DNA of 64,000 nucleotides from Ministeria vibrans ATCC 50519 (taxonomy: Eukaryota > Protista > Filasterea), in NCBI GenBank assembly GCA_943704425.1, contig CALSCP010000408.1, forward strand, positions 82,211-146,210, in the 5' to 3' direction. Shown in pieces: positions 28,458-44,322 of the stretch; position 1 is the first letter of the stretch, and each line of letters starts with the position of its first letter. The notes beneath the pieces are model-generated. The model had not been told where the DNA came from and did no database searches. It saw nothing but the letters and a program-made list of their open reading frames with translations. A program made the position numbers and the translations under genes.

Positions 28458-31400
28458 ATGATGCCGTGGCCTGTCCTCCTGCTGGTGCTTCTTGTCCACG
28501 GCGTCGGCGCTGGCAATTGCGGTGCGCGACAAGTTCTCACCTCAACGCACGGCCTGCTCGGCGACGGCCCATTAAACTACGCCAGCCGAGCCGCCTGCGA
28601 GTTTCACATTGTTGGTGGAAGCTCCCTGGCGGGTGCGCCCAACGCCATTGTGCTCACTTTCGGCTCGTTTGCCACCGAGTGTGCCTACGACTTCCTCTTC
28701 GTGTACGACGGCGATACCTTTGGCGCTCCGCTCCTCGCCGCCTTCACAGGCAACCAGGTACGCTGCTGGTTCATCGCCACTACAGACGACGCGTTTCCTC
28801 CTCTCAAATTCTCCGTCGTGTGTCTTACTTTCGCTTCTCTCTCTCTGTATCACTTTGTTCCATTCTCTCTCTCACTTTGTTTCTCTCTCTATCACTTTGT
28901 TTCTTTCTCTCTATCACTTTGTTTTTCTCTCTCTCTATCACTTTGTTTCTTTCCCTCTCCTCTCTCTCACACTCTCTTTTCATCTTGCCTCCTTGCAGCT
29001 TCCGCCTATGGTCGTTGCGCGCTCAGGTCACATGCTCGTGTACCTGTACGGCGACGTCAACTACAGTCTTGACGGCTTCTCTGCCGAGTATTTTGTCTCG
29101 CCCTGTCCCCTCAATTGCTCCGACCATGGCGTGTGTCTGAGCAACGGTGTCTGTCAGTGTGACCCCGATCGAACAGGCGAAGCGTGCGAAATCGAGCGAT
29201 GTCCCAATGACTGTGGTTCGCACGGCGCCTGTGTGCAGGGTCGATGTTCGTGCCACGCAGACTATGCGGGTCCCTCGTGCAATGTGAGCGACTCATCCTT
29301 GTTTGTGTGGTCACCACTCATGAACGGTCCCGCGCGAGGCGACGCCGAATTGCCCGCGCGTGCTAAACACGCCATGACGTATCTGGACGCCGACGATGTC
29401 GCCATTGTCTTTGGTGGCCATGGTCTGTCGCAAACATTCAATGACGTGTGGATGTTACTTGTGAGCTCACTCAAGTGGCGTCTACTCGCGCCGACCACAA
29501 CAGCTCAGCCCGTCGCTCGTTACGCGCTCGGTTTTGCGCCGCTTTCAAGTCCCTTTCCCGCCTGGCTCGTGTCCGCTGCCACATCCTCGCCCACACACAT
29601 ATTTATTGCGTTTGGAGGATTAAATGGCACTGCATGGCCTCTGGGCGATGCCTGGCTCATGACACTGAGCGCTACGCCTTCCGCGAGCAGCGCCTCCTCC
29701 ATTGAGTGGCACGAAGCGGCGGCTGCGCCCGAACCACGGGCGGGCCACTCGTGCACCGAGGTGCCCGATGGCCGCGTCATTGTACTCGGGGGTTCGACAA
29801 CGCGCGCAGCTTATGCTTTTGGGAGCCTCGAGTACACACCGACAACGAACGCGTGGCGGTCGCTTTCGCCCATCGGCACTGGACCCGGCGGCCTCTATGG
29901 GCACTCGGCGTTGCTTGTCGAGCACTTGTCCGCCATCCTCGTGTTTGGTGGCGCATCGCCTGTTACCGCGTCCTTCTCGCTCACGACCGATGCTCTCTAC
30001 TTGTATCACTATGGCGAACACCGTTGGACTTCCATTGTCCCGGCGGGCGACACCTTCCTGCCTGTCACCAATGTGATGCCTACCGCTCGGTCGTTTGCGG
30101 CCGCAGCCATGCTGACACCAACGCGTCTGATTGTCGCCGGCGGCTACGAGCATCGGCATTGGCTTGATGAAACGTGCTATGGCAGTGACACATTCATGTT
30201 TGACCTCGCTTGCGGCACCTGGGTGAGATACTCGGAGCCGCTGGCGCGTACCATTTTGCCTGTCGTGCCCCAAGGATTCACCTTTGCCAACGGCACCCTC
30301 TCAAGCGTCCACTATGCAGCGGAGTGGGGTCGTTTTGGACACACGGGCTTTGTACGACAACGCTCGTCCGCCAATGGAGCAACACGGCCCGCACAATTTG
30401 TGGTCCTTGCCGGATTTTCGGGGGTTGCGCGGCACGATATTTCCTTCATGAATGTGCCCTTGAACGCCTCACACTCGTGCACACAGTTGCCGCCGACCGC
30501 ATCCAACTGCTATGCGGACACCGAGTGTTCGTGGTGTGCGCGGAACAGCTCTGATGTGGGCGTCTACACGAATGGAACGTGTCTCGCTGGCGAGACTGCC
30601 GCTTGGCTCGAATGCGATAGCGAGGCGTCCACCGCCAACACCAGTGTTGCGCTGCTGACGCGTGTGTGTGCCGATCCCTGCAGCAACACTCACTCGTGCA
30701 TCGAGTGTGCCCAGAGTGTTGCCTGCGGCTGGTGCGGTGGCTCGGCCACCTGCATGGCTGCGAGCGATCTGCCCACGGAATGCTTCAGTGTAAGAGTGAC
30801 GTCGACCGACGCTTGTCGTCTAGAATCGCGCACGAATGGCACATTGTCATTTGAGCGATGGGACAGCATTGGCGGTATTGGTATGTATGCGTTGCAGACG
30901 GCCGCCTCCTTCCCACTGTATCCAACGCTCACGGGTCGCTTGAGTGCCTACGACACAGGCACACTGCCGCAGAATACAGGCGCACGACTGCGCGGCTTCA
31001 TTGTTCCGCCCGTCTCGGGCACTTACACATTTGCCGTGGCTGCCGACGACACTGCCGATCTGTACTTGTCTTCAAGTCCCTTTCCGACTGCGGTGGAGAC
31101 AGCGACGGTGATAGCGAGTGTGCCAGGCTGGACACACGCGAATGAGTATGACAAGTACTCAGCGCAAATTTCACCTCCTCTCATCCTTCAGGCGAATCGC
31201 TGGTATTACACCGAGCTGCGCGTGAAGAATGGCGTTGGTGACGGGTTTGCCACAGTCGTGTGGACTGCGCCCGCAAGCAGTGGTATTTCGCCCGATTCGA
31301 TTGTTGGCAATTCGTACATTTGGCCGTGGACCAGTGGCAACTGTTCCAACTTACCTACATGCGGTGCGTGTGCCGCCGATTTTGACTGCGGTTGGTGCGT

Positions 31401-34400
31401 GACCACGCATACGTGTGTCGCACGCCTCAGCACGGCAGCGGAAACTTGCGGCACGTCGGCGCTGGCAATGGACGCGAGCGAGTGTGAATCGTGTACGCAC
31501 GAGTATCGTTCGTGCGACGAGTGCGCGTCGCGTCCTACCTGCGAGTGGTACGCTTCACGCGGCTGCCAACCGCGCTCGTCGGCTGTGGACGTGTCGCCCT
31601 CGACGGGCATTCGACTCATCTACCGTAACGTCAGTCAGTGTGAGGTGCCCTGTCGTCTGCGACCCAACTGTGCCTCGTGCGCCGACACGGCCACTGCATC
31701 GCCGTGCTACTGGTGCGAGAGTACCAACTCATGTGTAGATCAGGCTAGTTTTACATCGCTCTATCCGCTCGGCCAGTGTCGCAGCTGGGTGTCGACTGGA
31801 CGTGCAAGCCAGTGTCCCAATTGCACACGACACGACTCATGTGCGTCGTGTATCGACAACGAGCAGTGTGGCTGGTGTTTTGACGCCTCGTCGCCAGCAC
31901 GTCCAGGACACTGCGTCTTTGGTGCGCTTCTTGGCTCGACCCTCTGTCCGGCCACTACCACCCACACCACCGCCAGTAATAGCACAGCGATGGTGACAAC
32001 GACAATTGTGCGATCTTGGGCCTACACGTCGTGCCCCGACATTGATGAGTGTGCGGCGGGCCTGGCGCTTTGTCATGCGAATGCAACGTGCACGAATCTG
32101 CCCGGTTCGTTCTTGTGTGAGTGTCTGCCCGGCTACACTGGCACGGGTGTACATTGTGTGCCCGTCTGCTCGCAGGGATGCGCCAGTGGCGGTGGAGTCT
32201 GCGCGGCACCCGACGAATGTGTGTGTCACGATGGTTTCCACTCGGCCAACTGCTCGCAGGCGTGCATCTGCAATGGCCATGCCAGTTGTGATCCAGTCAG
32301 CGGTGTGTGCCATGCGTGTCGCGACAACACCGAGGGTGGTTCGTGCGAGCGGTGTCGCGCCGGGTACTTTGGAGACGCGCGTGCGGGCGGTACCTGCTCC
32401 CCCTGCGAATGCGGTGTGTACGGCGACGAGTTGTTGGGCCTGTGCTCGCCAGTGACTGGCGATTGTTTTTGCCGTGCACCCGCGACGGGCGTTCTCGGAT
32501 GTGATGCATGTCAGACCGGCTATTATGCCGTGCGCAATGCAACATCAACCCAGTTGTTGCGCTGTGTGGCGGCGTGCGACGAGCGGGTTCAATTAGTGCA
32601 GCAGTCGGGCTACTTGGGCACAGGCAAGGGACAGTACGATCCCATGAGAACGTGTCAGTGGGTAATTCAGCCGGCGGGTCGGGCCAATGTCACAGCAACC
32701 GCCTCCCAATCGACCGTGATACGTTTGACCTTTCGTCGTTTTGCAACAGAGTGCTCCTACGACTATCTCTTTCTCTTTGACGGTGACTCGGTGCGCGCCC
32801 CTCGACTTGGCTCCTTTTCGGGCACCGGACTGCCCGCGCCTGTTGTTGCCTACTCAGGCGCATTGCTGGTTCGCTTTTATTCAGACACGAACTTTGTTCT
32901 GGACGGATTCGAGGCGTTCTACGAAGTGGTTCCGCTCGCGAGCGTCGCCTGTCCTCAAGACTGCGGCAAGTATGACGGGCGTGGCGCGTGTAGCGACGAT
33001 GGTCAGCGATGCGAATGTGCGTCCGGATGGAGTGGTGCGGACTGTGGCACGGTTTTCAATGGCAGCACAGGTGGCACGGTTGCAGCAGCTCGCAATGTGT
33101 CCCAAGTGGGTGCTTGGCAGGCGCTCACCGTCGGACTTTTGGCTCGTGCGAGTCACACCGCCACCTACCTTGCCGGCGACGATTCGTTGGTGATCCTCGG
33201 CGGCTATCTCCAGCGATCACAGAAGGTGTTGTGGCACGCGCAACGGTACAGCTTTGCTCGTGATGAGTGGCAGTGGATTTTGCATGGTGCACACGAGCCG
33301 AGTGCGCGCTACTCGCATGCCACGGTGGCACTCGCTCCCACGCGACTTCTTGTCTTTGGTGGTGAAACGTCAAACTTGACGACCAGCGACGAGATGTGGA
33401 CGTACGAAGGTGGATCGGGCACGTGGAGCGACCACACGTCCACGCTGCCTCCGCTGGGTTCGCCAAATCGACCGCACGCCGTGTCGGGTCACTCGCTCAC
33501 GTATGTGCCAGCCAGCTCGAGCGTATACCTCATTGGTGGCACGTCCGACATCTATGGCTACACGGCGTCCATGTTTCACCTGGACACGGATCGGCTCGAG
33601 TGGACGCGAGTGCCGGAGCCCGTCTCGGGCGGACTACACCCGGGAGTGTTTGGTCATGCGGCGGCCGTTGACCTCGTCAGCGAGCGAATCTACGTGTCGG
33701 GTGGTCTGCGCTCATCGGGCACCTCTTCTTTCAATACCGATGCGCTCTTCATCTACGCTTATCGCACCAACGAGTGGCGTCGTGTAGCACCGCGCTCCGG
33801 CGACAATTTACCGCCACACTATCTGGCCACGAGCGTCTGGCACGACGGACGTTTAGTGCTTGCGGCCGGCAGTACGTTCTCGCACGGTCTTCAGTACCCC
33901 TGCTATGCCTCCGATGTACTCGTATACACGCCCGAGTGCAACTCCTACCAGACCCTAGCGCGACCGGCGAACGCGACGGGTCCCACGCTGGCAGGTAGTA
34001 TTGGCAGTGCGGGTGCACTGCGTGGCGACCAACTGATTGTCTCGGGGGGGTTTGCGGGCGTTTCTCAGGCAACCTCCTTGGCACTGCAACTGCCGCGTGG
34101 CGACGAGTGGTGCTCGACGCATGACGTGGCCACGTGCGCGACCAATCCAAGTTGTACGCTTGCCAGAGAACATGTCAATGGGACGCTCACGCGCCAGTGG
34201 TGTCTGTCGGTGACCGCTTCGCGTGCGCTGCCGTCGTCGCCCTTGCTGACTTTCTTGTCGTACGAAAATCAGACGGCGTGTGACCCAACCCCGTGCAACC
34301 AGTTGTTCTCATGCGACACATGCACCGCAGCGACTGGCGTCTCCTGCGGTTGGTGTGTTGGTGCTTTGGCGTGCATGGAACGTGATGGCGCAGTGGCGTC

Positions 34401-36546
34401 CGCCTCGAGTGTCGGCTGTCCCGCGTCAACCACGTTTGTCACGACACCTCAAGAGTGTTTTGACAGCGGGTCGTGTCGCACGTCGGTTGATTGTCGCGAC
34501 TGCAACGACCGCTCGGGGTGCATTGCGAGCAACCAGTTCCTATGCAGCTCGACACAGGAGACGCCCGCGCCAGTTGCCGTCACGTGTAACCCCACATGTG
34601 ATTCGCACGCGACGTGTGGCGAGTGCACGTCCGGCTCGAATGACGAGTGTGCCTGGTGTGATGCGACGTCCAAGTGCATTCGTTTTGACGGCTACCTCGG
34701 CCTTCAGGTGTACGGCCAGTGCTTGGCTTGGACCCGCACCGCATCCCAGTGTCCCAAGCCGTGCGCAACGCACACAGACTGCGAGTCGTGTGGCGAGCAA
34801 GCTGAGTGTGGCTGGTGTGCTGAGCCGGGAGTGTTGGGACGTGGTGTGTGCATGGACGGCGCGGCGAGTGGTCCGGCGACGGCAGCGCAGTGTACGACAC
34901 CCAACAACTGGGCGTACACCACGTGTCCCGACGTTGATGAGTGTCTGCTGGGCACGGCGACGTGCGCAATGAATGCGACGTGTGCCAACCTGGTGGGCAG
35001 CTACGAGTGCACTTGTGATGCGGGATTTTCGGGCGATGGACTGAGTGTGTGCGAGCCGGTGTGCTCGCAGGGCTGTTCGAATGGTTTTTGCCTTCAGCCG
35101 GACGTGTGTCAGTGCTTTCTGGGCTACCGCGGGTACAACTGCTCGGACGACTGTGGCTGCAACGGCCACAGTCATTGTGTGCGTGCTAATGAGTGTCTGC
35201 AGTGTCTCGATCACACGACGGGCGCACAGTGCGACGAGTGCGAACAGGGTTATTTTGGGACGGCCATTGGGGGCGGACTGTGCCAGTCGTGCGAGCAACT
35301 GTGCCATGGCAATTCTGCAAACTGTACGGGAGGTGCGAGCGGCGGTACGTGCGTGAACTGTGCGAACCAGTCTCGTGGGGACTTTTGCGACGAGTGTGTG
35401 GCGGGCTACACGCTGTACCGCGCGGCGCACATCAAGACGGTGCCGGGAGAGTGCCACGCGTGTCCATGCAATGGCCACTCGACGACTTGCGATGGGCGCA
35501 CGGGGGTGTGTTCGCAGTGTCGCGACGGCACTCAGGGAGTTCATTGTGAGCAGTGTCAGGAGTTGCTCGTGGGCTCGGCACTGAATGGTGGTCGGTGCTT
35601 TCGCACCTCCACGCAGGATGTTGCACCGAGCGTGGGTCAAGAGCTTCTCAATGGCGAGCAGATGTCGGTGGTTCTGTCGCCTCAGTTCCACGACACGCCT
35701 GTGCGCGTGACCGTCGATGTGCGGGCGGGTGGGCGTGTGGACTTGGTGACGGCGATGGACGCGCAGCTGTCGCAGGTGGTGTCGCGTCTGTATAATGTGG
35801 AGCGTCGCGTAGACACAATGATTCCGACGAGTGTCTTTGAGGGCGGTGGACTCGTCTTCGTCGATGTGACGGCGCTCTCACAGGCAACAACAGTGCGCGT
35901 GTACTTTACGCAGTCGTCCTCCGAGATCAACCTGGTTCTCTTCTTCACCGTGTTCTTTGCCAGTTTCTTCTTCCTTCTTCTTGTTGTGGTGGCCATGGGA
36001 CGCGCACAGATGCGCCGAGTAAACATTGCGCGTGCAACGGCGCGCGAACAGGCGATACTGCGGCTCGCCGAGCGGCCCATTGGCCAGGTGTGGCTCCTGC
36101 TAGGCAGTGCGTTTGACCATGCGCAATGGGTACATCGCTTGGGCTCGATGGCGCATCAGCCGCTCGCCAAGGACCTGCAGGTGGCAGCGCACACGTACTT
36201 TGTGGAGCACCCACATGAGAGAGCGAGTGCGCGGCCCATCTCTCTGGGCACGGCGCTGTTGCGCACGCCGCCACCGGGATATGGAGTCAAGTCGCCCATG
36301 ATTGAACGACGAGATATTGCAGTTGAAGAGGTGGCACGTTCACGACGACGGTTGAGTGCAACGGAGGCAGTGGCAGCGCTGGGCACGAGTGGCGAGGGAG
36401 ACGAGCGCCACCACGGAGAGCGAGACGACTTGGACGCGATAGATACGGGTGGGCCCTCTTCTCTTGTGGACTCTTCTGGCGACGACGCTGATCAGATGGA
36501 GTTGTCTCTTATTACCGGTGGGGACTACTACGAGTCGTCAGTGTAA
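28458..36546 (+). CDS. MEGF8: MEGF8/attractin-family type I receptor (CUB-EGF-Kelch-PSI-PA14-EGF/LE-CUB-Kelch-PSI-EGF/LE-TM)
   Basis: Two CUB domains (FATECAYDFLFVYDGD; FATECSYDYLFLFDGD), two Kelch blocks, many CGWC PSI repeats, Ca-EGF (DIDEC, DVDEC), laminin-EGFs, TM INLVLFFTVFFASFFFLL; a single intron ~28758-28998. Confidence 0.92.
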
Positions 36547-36684
36547 CATGATTATACTTTTGTATGAAAAAAAAGAATAAAAAAATCAATAATTTTTTCA
36601 ATTATTTCTGATTTCAAGTGAATTCAATGTGACTATTGTCAAGTGTCAACTTACAACTAACTTTTTTGTTGCTGTGTGATTGGC

Positions 36685-36896
36685 ATGCAAGTGCAAGCAA
36701 GAACTGCCTCGGTTGCTGTGATTGTCACGTTTGCCCTCGGCATGTGGGCTGGCTATCGTCTTGCGCTGCTGCGGAAGCAAGTACCGTTTCTCATTGAGCC
36801 GATTGTGTCATCTGACTCTCTTCCTCTCTGATTCTCCGTGTGCAGTGGGCCAAGGTGAAGCTTGAAAAGGCCAAGAAGGACTACAACCGACTCTGA
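36685..36896 (+). CDS. MTLN: 48-aa mitoregulin-like single-pass microprotein (2 exons)
   Basis: Exon 36685-36780, GT-AG intron 36781-36845 and exon 36846-36896 give MQVQARTASVAVIVTFALGMWAGYRLALLRKQWAKVKLEKAKKDYNRL, matching the mitoregulin pattern VxxRTxxxxVxVxFAxGxxxG[WY]xxxxLR plus a basic tail. Confidence 0.75.
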
Positions 36897-37299
36897 TCCG
36901 AAAGAGATTGCTCGTTTGGGTGTGCGAGCGCTGTCAAAAAGAGAATGTTCAATGAATGAATGTAACAATGTATCTCAGCGCAGAGCCCCATCTGCCCCCT
37001 TCCAGTCCCTCGGTTCCACTGCTAGCTCATCTCCTGAACGACCCTCCCTCACTTTCATGTCGGAGGGGGTTATATCGTAGCGCAGAGTGTTCTGATCGGC
37101 AATAAATGACATCTCATTAGTTAAGAGGGAAGAGCAAAAGACCATCACACCATTGCAGTCTCTGCAGATTCTGCCTTCGTGGATCATCAAATTAACTAGT
37201 TAATCGCTCGAGTGAGTCGAGTCTCGATCATCAGTCCATCTGTCGCAAAATTTACTGTGTTACATATTGTTTGATTCTGCCAAGAAGAATCTCGACACA

Positions 37300-37589
37300 T
37301 CAATAGGCACATAAATGCTTCGTAATGAGTCGACTAATAATCTTTTGGGCGGACATCCCGCCGATTTCGTCGATCTAAGGACAAAAATCTGGTGAGAAGG
37401 TAAAAAGACAAAAGCTGCTATGGTACAATAACAATAGTATTAACATGTAACAACGACACCACAACAACACTGACCTTCTTGCCAGCCTTATACACAAACA
37501 CAAGGGGCACGGCGGCTATGCAGAGATCACGGCCAAGTTTTGGAAGCTGCCCAATGTCAACCTGCAGACAAAAAGCGGTCAGAAAGAGT

Positions 37590-37626
<37 letters not shown>

Positions 37627-37872
37627 AGAAAGGTCAAGAGTGAAAATATCAAAATAATATCAAATATCAGAGAGACTCAGGAGGTGTCCTGGTGCGGATA
37701 CCTCGACGAAGGTGGCCTTGTCGCCGTGTACATCGGAAAGTTCGTCGAAAGGCTGCTGCATCAGCGTGGCGGGAGTCGAGAACGAGCCGGTAAAGCTGAC
37801 AATAACAAGATCGTGTCCGAGGATCAAACGATCAAACTCCTCGGCAGACGAACACAGCGTTGTTCCAGGCAT
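37300..37872 (-). CDS. Thioredoxin-fold protein lacking the CxxC motif (3 exons)
   Basis: EEFDRLI..DLVIVSFTGSFSTPATLMQQPFDELS..ATFVEVDI..AAVPLVFVYKAGKKIDEIGG; WCGPC is replaced by FSTPA. Confidence 0.8.
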
Positions 37873-42704: not shown

Positions 42705-44322
42705 TTATTCGAGAAGTGGTCGCTGGAGCTCCTGGAATTTTGCGGCGGAGTGACGCGAGCGCAATTTCATAATGCCAAAGACGACGAGGGCAAAGGCAAG
42801 GACACAGCCGATGACAATGCCGGCAATCGCACCGTCTGACACCTTCTTCTTCTGTGGAACGGGAGCAATCGTAGGAGCAGGTCCAGTTGCACTTGCTGAG
42901 GGAACAGGGACGGCAGAGGCCGAAGCAGCGGTCGAGACAGAGGCAGAGGCAGTGGGAGCAGGCGCGATAGAGGCAGAGGGAGCAGGGGAGACAGAAGCAG
43001 AGGGAGCAGACGAGGCTGTGGTAGAGGAAGTCATAGAAGCGGATGAAGCAACCGAGGCCGAGGCAACAGAAGAGGCTGACGGGGCAGTGGAAGCAGAGAT
43101 GGAAGAAGAGGCGGATGCAGAAGCGGGCACAGTGGAAGCAGTGGCGGACGCAGAAGCGGGAACAGTGGAAGCAGTGGCGGACGCAGAAGCGGGCACAGTG
43201 GAAGCAGTGGCGGACGCAGAAGCGGGCACAGTGGAAGCAGTGGCGGACGCAGAAGCGGACACAGTGGAAGCAGAGGCGGGCACAGTCGAGACCGAGGCAG
43301 AGGCGGGCATCATGGAGACGGACGGGACTGGCACGGCGGAAGAGGCCAGAGCGGTGGGGTTCATGGTAGGAGTGGGCATGATGGGGGCAACATAGCTGTA
43401 AAAAGAAAGAGGTGAGAACAGAGAATCAATATAGCAATAGTACTACAATCATTAATAGTTATTCTTTGCTTTTTTGTTTGGTACGGAGGAAAACTGTTGC
43501 ACGGAATGGAAAGAGTGTAGTTGGACGAAGTTTGGCCGATGGTCGCGTTGATGCAGGTGTCGAGAGGAAGCGAGTAGAGGATGCTGTGTGATGTGCAATT
43601 CTCGTAGTCAAGCTCATTTGTGGTGGCGTTGTACGCGTAGTGGATGTCGCCAGGTGAGCAGGCGACGGAGGTGTCGAGGGGCACAAGGGCAATCGCCGAG
43701 GCGCCGCCCTCGTTGGCGTACGGGACACACGAGTGTTGAAAGACGGTCGACATAAACACAAGGGTGCTGTTCGCCGGCGGCGTGGGCACGTCAATCATGC
43801 AATGGTCGTCGCCGGAGAGGAGACGAAAGGCCAAGCGTGTGGACGCATCGGCAAACACACACTGACTGTCCTCCACAAGCGTGGTGTTGAGAACACATTC
43901 GGCGGGGTGGGAGATGGGGCAAGGAGGAGGCTGTTCCAGCGATCTGCATTGGAGAGAAAGGCGTGCGTGGCGTGTGTGAGACTTGGGATGAGTCGCGCGT
44001 GCAAACACAAAGGCATGTACCCACAAAAGCAGCCGTAATCGAGGTGCACGGCACCCACGCCCTCGGGGGTGATACGATAGTATGAGGTGGGGAGATCCAC
44101 GAGGTAAGGCATGGCATTCCAGGACGGCGTGACGGGCAGACGGGCGATGGTTATCTCGGTGAGATTGTTCGCAAAGGGGTTGAGGCAATCACCCTCGTCG
44201 CTGGCCCACGTGAACTGGTTTAGGTAGTAGAAGTCGCGGAGACCATTGTCATTGTCGGCCGGGATGGCAACGGCAGAGACGCACGCGAGAGCTGCAGCCA
44301 AGACAAAGACGAAGATTTTCAT
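42705..44322 (-). CDS. Type I membrane glycoprotein with Cys-containing ectodomain and Ser/Ala/Thr mucin-like stalk
   Basis: Signal peptide MKIFVFVLAAALACVSA; 3 exons; ASTVPASASAT repeats; TM GAIAGIVIGCVLAFALVVFGIM; short tail ending RPLLE. Confidence 0.8.
43120..43290. repeat. 33-bp coding tandem repeat (ASTVPASASAT)
   Basis: gaagcgggcacagtggaagcagtggcggacgca repeated about 4-5 times. Confidence 0.9.

Follow-up and report, generated by a model that had tools for sequence, protein, structure and literature searches.

A candidate two-exon gene for a membrane microprotein, with a sub-threshold resemblance to mitoregulin

We asked whether a short spliced reading frame, lying in a gap of ~700 nt between two convergent genes of a non-vertebrate eukaryote, is a real gene and, if so, whether its product belongs to the mitoregulin family, as an earlier note on this DNA had proposed. 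Mitoregulin (also MTLN, LINC00116, MOXI, or MPM) is a much-studied protein of disputed mechanism, placed by some in the inner and by others in the outer membrane and credited with many partners, and in reviews it counts as an innovation of the vertebrates. The vertebrate protein, Mtln, is 56 aa long; its N-terminal transmembrane segment is hydrophobic and conserved, its C-terminus carries positive charge, and its gene is held to be restricted to vertebrates, invertebrates being believed to lack it (PMC11920140). The protein likely forms a hexamer, and two of its tryptophans, Trp25 of the helix and Trp37 of the tail, fall at the interfaces predicted between the subunits (PMC11732159). The frame was analyzed within a window of 64,000 nucleotides, by which we mean the whole stretch of DNA under study.

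The reading frame and its surroundings

The frame comprises 48 codons in two exons (Table 1). On re-reading the sequence, the exon and intron boundaries proposed in the earlier note proved exact, and both translations were reproduced. The frame is also, as had been claimed, missing from the ORF track: the bacterial-style list holds at this place just an unspliced 51-aa frame at 36676-36831, so the spliced model is hidden from it. Because of an in-frame TAA at 36658-36660, 27 nt 5′ of the start, the ATG at 36685 is the first of its frame, and since the length of the candidate intron is not a multiple of 3, exon 2 is read in a different genomic frame. Two branch-like motifs lie within that intron, CTGAC at 36812-36816, with its A 30 nt ahead of the acceptor, and CTGAT at 36828-36832. 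The predicted product starts with a short N-terminus (MQVQART), continues into a moderately hydrophobic helix that includes the aromatic residues Trp21 and Tyr24 (best 19-residue Kyte-Doolittle mean, 1.69, at residues 10-28), leaves exon 1 through a juxtamembrane RLALLRKQ, and ends in a tail with 9 Lys/Arg vs 2 Asp/Glu among the last 25 residues.

Table 1. Features of the candidate gene and its neighbors, in positions of the window
Feature	Position	Strand	Description
MEGF8-like gene	28999-36546	+	Upstream neighbor; stop codon 36544-36546
AT-rich spacer	36547-36684	+	138 nt, GC 0.254; between MEGF8-like stop and candidate ATG
Exon 1	36685-36780	+	ATG at 36685; 32 codons; translation MQVQARTASVAVIVTFALGMWAGYRLALLRKQ
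Predicted transmembrane helix	36706-36771	+	About residues 8-29, ASVAVIVTFALGMWAGYRLALL; boundaries from hydropathy alone
G19xxxG23, small-xxx-small motif in predicted helix	36739-36741, 36751-36753	+	Codons of the two glycines
Candidate intron	36781-36845	+	65 nt, GT..AG; GTACCG donor, CT-rich tract, CAG acceptor (36843-36845)
Exon 2	36846-36896	+	16 codons and TGA; translation WAKVKLEKAKKDYNRL; basic, probably amphipathic helix
AATAAA hexamer	37101-37106	+	~205 nt 3′ of the stop; possible poly(A) signal
Thioredoxin-like gene	about 37300-37872	-	Downstream neighbor; at least three exons

Introns typical of this genome were inferred from HSP70 paralogues (contigs C324, C2846, C2779, C1920, C515, C1646, C1887, and C2677) by means of abutting profile coordinates and reading frames, an approach used in place of a naive ORF-join scan and a count of donor enrichment, both of which were too noisy. 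These introns have the donors GTATGA, GTAAAA, GTAATA, GTAACG, and GTAAGT, T-rich tracts, and TAG or CAG acceptors, and, apart from a few of 470-600 nt, most of them measure 76-130 nt. Their donors are of a GTA type with little conservation past position 3 and no strong G at +5. The gene for ATP synthase subunit e, discussed below, has the donors GTACAC and GTACGT. Given the similarity of the HSP70 and subunit e introns to the candidate intron, its GTACCG donor and CAG acceptor are typical of the genome, and its 65 nt are slightly short against the prevailing range.

The frame could nonetheless be open by chance, as a piece of intergenic sequence or of the 3′UTR of the MEGF8-like gene whose hydrophobic stretch scores by accident against a small transmembrane family and that a GT..AG pair extends by luck, a reading that we take seriously and regard as rather unlikely. 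Comparable structures speak for it. Across the 64-kb window, we counted 27 two-exon models, which use 20 start codons, when each was required to begin with the first ATG of its frame, to have 20-60 codons in exon 1 and at least 10 in exon 2, a GTA donor, and an intron of 45-150 nt with at least 17/25 pyrimidines followed by YAG, and to total 40-70 codons. By the same criteria, the ATG at 36685 has one acceptable splice model. Because of these 27 models, the gene model alone, without other evidence, is not beyond chance. Simple arithmetic adds that 48 stop-free codons are expected ~10% of the time, and the frame begins just 139 nt past the MEGF8-like stop codon. Against chance stand the makeup of the intron, with its branch-like motif at -30 and its long pyrimidine tract, and a choice of codons closer to the coding than to the non-coding distribution. 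The synonymous-codon score of the candidate is 0.124 per codon, compared with 0.148 +/- 0.131 for 48-codon windows from long exons and -0.028 +/- 0.162 for 323 non-coding ATG ORFs, and it exceeds the score of 85% of these null ORFs. Codon usage is thus mildly coding-like, with an estimated likelihood ratio of ~2. This synonymous-only score replaced one derived from MEGF8 codon frequencies, which was uninformative because a Cys/Gly-rich protein biases them.

If the candidate is a gene, the AT-rich spacer upstream would need to hold the poly(A) site of the MEGF8-like gene as well as the small gene's promoter and 5′UTR. Past the candidate's stop, GC content remains close to 50% over 200 nt, so the frame does not form a sharp coding island. 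A scan of 36300-37400 against Rfam returned no RNA family that accounts for the region. The MEGF8-like gene has an unbroken exon of ~7.5 kb within an otherwise intron-rich genome, and the closest relatives of its product are a JGI metagenome protein (38% identity) and then a protein of Monosiga brevicollis (36%). Synteny via MEGF8 orthologues was uninformative, the contig of the closest one (38% identical) ending 120 nt past the gene. The thioredoxin-like protein on the other side lacks the active-site cysteines (VIVSFTGSFSTPA), and its gene has the donors GTATCC and GTCAGT and, in its first intron, a (GA)n microsatellite at ~37590-37625.

The match to the mitoregulin profile

For Pfam and database searches, each exon was queried separately or the unspliced frame was used. 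Exon 1 alone matched a single Pfam family, PF22002 (Mitoregulin), with an E-value of 2.9e-4 and 21.1 bits. The curated gathering cut-off of this family is 27 bits, and exon 1 alone falls below it; judged on that exon by itself, the proposal currently fails the refuting condition set in the earlier note, namely the lack of a significant profile match. The alignment has no gaps and is anchored at the N-terminus, with residues 2-31 of the candidate on positions 3-32 of the 56 in the profile. This is the register (residue i at profile i+1) in which the earlier note had placed the candidate on human mitoregulin, recovered here independently by Pfam, if below threshold. The unspliced 48-aa frame scored 19.8 bits against PF22002, and exon 2 alone (as a 20-aa reference) had no match in Pfam. 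When all six frames of the 29.7-Mb genome were searched with the PF22002 profile, the candidate locus ranked first, at 17.9 bits and an E-value of 0.094; exon 2 was not separately picked up in that search. The runner-up lay 1 bit lower, at 16.9 bits and an E-value of 0.19. That second locus (G000:C2037:11502-11558, minus strand) is a poly-leucine/proline low-complexity segment, a typical false positive of small transmembrane profiles.

As a calibration, we drew from the six frames of the window 20 segments of 32 aa that look like transmembrane helices and share the geometry of exon 1, and 19 of the 20 had no match to any Pfam family. The remaining control, at 42759-42854 on the minus strand, matched six families of small membrane proteins, including Syndecan and DUF2273, with E-values of 0.006-0.4. 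This segment (QKKKVSDGAIAGIVIGCVLAFALVVFGIMKLR) lies within a 256-codon open frame, apparently that of a neighboring gene, and resembles the stretch that anchors a type I surface protein in the membrane. Since an apparently real membrane anchor thus reached 0.006 against other families, E-values for transmembrane queries look ~10-fold optimistic in this small control. The E-value of the candidate is ~20 times better than that of the best control, and unlike that control, the candidate matched one family only. We conclude that the PF22002 match is real but without genome-wide significance. It bears on the chance reading in both directions: a genome-wide E-value of 0.094 is compatible with a frame that is open by luck, whereas the blank results of 19 controls and the anchoring of the match at the N-terminus, on the first ATG past an in-frame stop, speak against one.

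The same results qualify the claim that the candidate resembles mitoregulin. What stands is that PF22002 is the sole Pfam match of exon 1 and that this is the genome's best PF22002 locus; the score of exon 1 by itself stays below the 27-bit cut-off. The boldest reading would go further and make the candidate a true PF22002 orthologue, predating animals and presumably resident in a mitochondrial membrane, associated with cardiolipin, and self-associating. We regard this as doubtful, and as less probable than a chance frame. The ungapped, N-terminally anchored match to a single family speaks for it, as does the low-complexity nature of the next-best locus in the genome. The general description of Mtln also fits the candidate, with a length of 48 compared with 56 aa, a hydrophobic N-terminal segment at about residues 8-29, and a basic C-terminus (PMC11920140). 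Both would be microproteins of ~50 aa in which a single transmembrane helix at the N-terminus bears small-xxx-small glycines (predicted in the candidate) and has an aromatic residue at its end, and in which the C-terminal helix is strongly basic. The interface tryptophans of Mtln are not kept in place, the equivalent of Trp25 being Tyr24 and the candidate's own tryptophans falling at 21 and 33; an aromatic residue is nevertheless retained at the first position, and the tryptophan that starts the candidate's tail is near Mtln Trp37 (PMC11732159). As a conservative aromatic substitution, Tyr24 for Trp25 is weak evidence either way.

Other observations weigh against orthology. In addition to the score below the cut-off and a genome-wide E-value 1 bit above noise, the match does not extend past the transmembrane exon, where E-values look optimistic, and exon 2 is blank; the tail of the candidate is like that of mitoregulin in composition alone, and Trp25 itself is not conserved. 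An anchor at the initiating ATG, a length of this order, and a basic tail are to be expected of any N-anchored membrane microprotein, and they are also what the locus was selected on for the earlier note. Unlike mitoregulin, the candidate would have a coding sequence interrupted by a putative intron and a host outside the vertebrates, the only group from which the family is reported. Mtln is held to be vertebrate-only (PMC11920140), and a mitoregulin outside that group has a low prior probability. A protist copy more recognizable than that of any invertebrate would make for an awkward history, although spliced genes of 50 codons are routinely missed in annotation.

Relatives and similar architectures

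Searches for relatives of the candidate returned none. A word-index search of 5.8 billion proteins with the unspliced frame found no candidate relative, phmmer with exon 1 against 1.84 billion representative proteins gave zero matches, and none of the 599 pattern matches that the unspliced frame of 48 aa produced in a scan of JGI metagenomes was confirmed. Against all PDB chains, including the small subunits of solved mitochondrial complexes, phmmer with exon 1 returned only a chance match to a GPCR (E-value, 9). The ESM Atlas, searched over all clusters and over named clusters only, held no relative; the nearest entries were unrelated bacterial DUFs at no more than 0.83, and the recognition value was low (2033, below 2300). 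There was no paralogue or haplotig of the candidate in the same genome, and the literature searched contained no paper that brings mitoregulin and non-vertebrate taxa together. Because a 32-aa query is weak in databases of this size, the blank searches rule out close relatives only. The organism itself is isolated in the protein databases, since no other protein there exceeds 38% identity to its MEGF8-like protein and the next best matches of its cytosolic HSP70 are ~73% identical, many of them from animals. One gene, on the ENA metagenome contig ERZ23497041 (SCHR19-1_SAMN09406010_METAG-scaffold_8778), matches that HSP70 (intronless, 637 aa) at 100% identity. With MEGF8, the gene content has an animal-like character, and the window is not human.

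The want of homologues in the word, phmmer, metagenome, and PDB searches and the low recognition value speak for a chance frame. For orthology with mitoregulin, they mean that phyletic continuity toward the vertebrates is missing from the word, phmmer, and metagenome searches, although a query of 32 aa has low power and microproteins are rarely annotated. The earlier inference that the family predates animals is therefore not established: the match is sub-threshold, with a genome-wide E-value of 0.094, it covers the transmembrane exon only, and it comes without intermediates. The locus is at present a lead drawn from sequence, and neither homology nor a pre-animal origin of mitoregulin is established by it.

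We also considered whether the candidate might be ATP synthase subunit e or another known small subunit of the respiratory chain or of a translocase. Subunit e is a small mitochondrial protein with an N-terminal membrane helix that carries a GxxxG motif, followed by a charged helical tail. The candidate is like the subunit e family (PF05680) in just this arrangement, with a predicted N-terminal membrane helix, a GxxxG packing motif, and a charged helical tail. Its tail may be similar to that of fungal subunit e, and the distance of its glycines from the conserved Arg is presumably ~6 residues greater than in subunit e. This general agreement of architecture is what recommends a known small subunit; we nevertheless consider such an identity very improbable. 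An exon of subunit e was found elsewhere in the genome (G000:C1478:65657-65776) at 33.1 bits, above the cut-off for PF05680 and the only match to that family in the genome. The subunit e gene has multiple exons. Its detection indicates that exon-by-exon family searches are able to find small mitochondrial membrane proteins here. With a gene of its own on contig C1478 and PF05680 blank at the candidate locus, subunit e was rejected as the identity of the candidate and can be considered effectively refuted, and the presence of this similar-looking family elsewhere lends some support to the mitoregulin reading. For the other known subunits, the blank phmmer search of PDB chains with exon 1 and the listing of mitoregulin alone by Pfam argue in the same direction. 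The earlier note had named a better match to another small mitochondrial transmembrane family as evidence that would overturn its proposal, and neither Pfam nor the PDB chains gave one with exon 1.

The candidate can be compared as well with the signal-anchored proteins of the mitochondrial outer membrane, in which a moderately hydrophobic N-terminal anchor is followed directly by basic residues. Like proteins of the Tom20/Tom70/OM45 type, the candidate has a predicted anchor of moderate hydropathy (mean, 1.69) with basic residues at once after it. Those proteins, however, are large and have cytosolic domains, whereas the corresponding "domain" of the candidate would be a helix of ~20 residues; the likeness proposed here is one of architecture.

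A predicted membrane microprotein and its possible meaning

Taken together, the evidence leads us to favor, tentatively and with somewhat less than even confidence, the reading that this locus is a real small two-exon gene for a 48-residue, N-anchored membrane microprotein whose family is unassignable. We favor it on account of the splice anatomy, with a single acceptable model for this ATG, the place of the frame between convergent genes and behind an AT-rich spacer, an intron like those of the genome, codon usage that leans toward coding, the coherent design of the product, and the sole Pfam match. The design, to which we give modest weight, consists of a 7-residue N-terminus, one helix, a juxtamembrane RLALLRK, and a lysine-rich helix, and such a succession of a helix and a basic amphipathic tail also counts against a chance frame.

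We infer the expression, splicing, topology, localization, and function of the candidate from its sequence. As a small gene of this kind, it would encode a protein whose N-terminal helix, at about residues 8-29, inserts as a signal anchor and crosses the membrane in a single pass. By the positive-inside rule, the short N-terminus would then lie on the far side, and the basic tail would face the cytosol or the matrix. The face of the helix formed by G19xxxG23, together with W21 and Y24, may pack against another helix, either in self-association or with the membrane helix of a partner, while the Lys-rich amphipathic tail may lie on the membrane and bind acidic phospholipids. Since moderate hydrophobicity with an adjoining basic cluster is the signature of outer-membrane signal anchors, a mitochondrial membrane would be the likeliest address of the candidate. 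Whether or not it is a member of the family, this predicted design is one that the candidate shares with vertebrate mitoregulin.

Should the candidate prove to be a true homologue of mitoregulin, the origin of the family would be pushed back by hundreds of millions of years, and the family would have been missed in invertebrates and protists only because spliced genes of 50 codons go unannotated. Trp25 would then not count among the truly essential residues, which would instead be the glycines, the Arg-Thr that precedes the helix, and the basic cluster next to the membrane, and the organism would offer a simple unicellular setting in which to study mitoregulin function.
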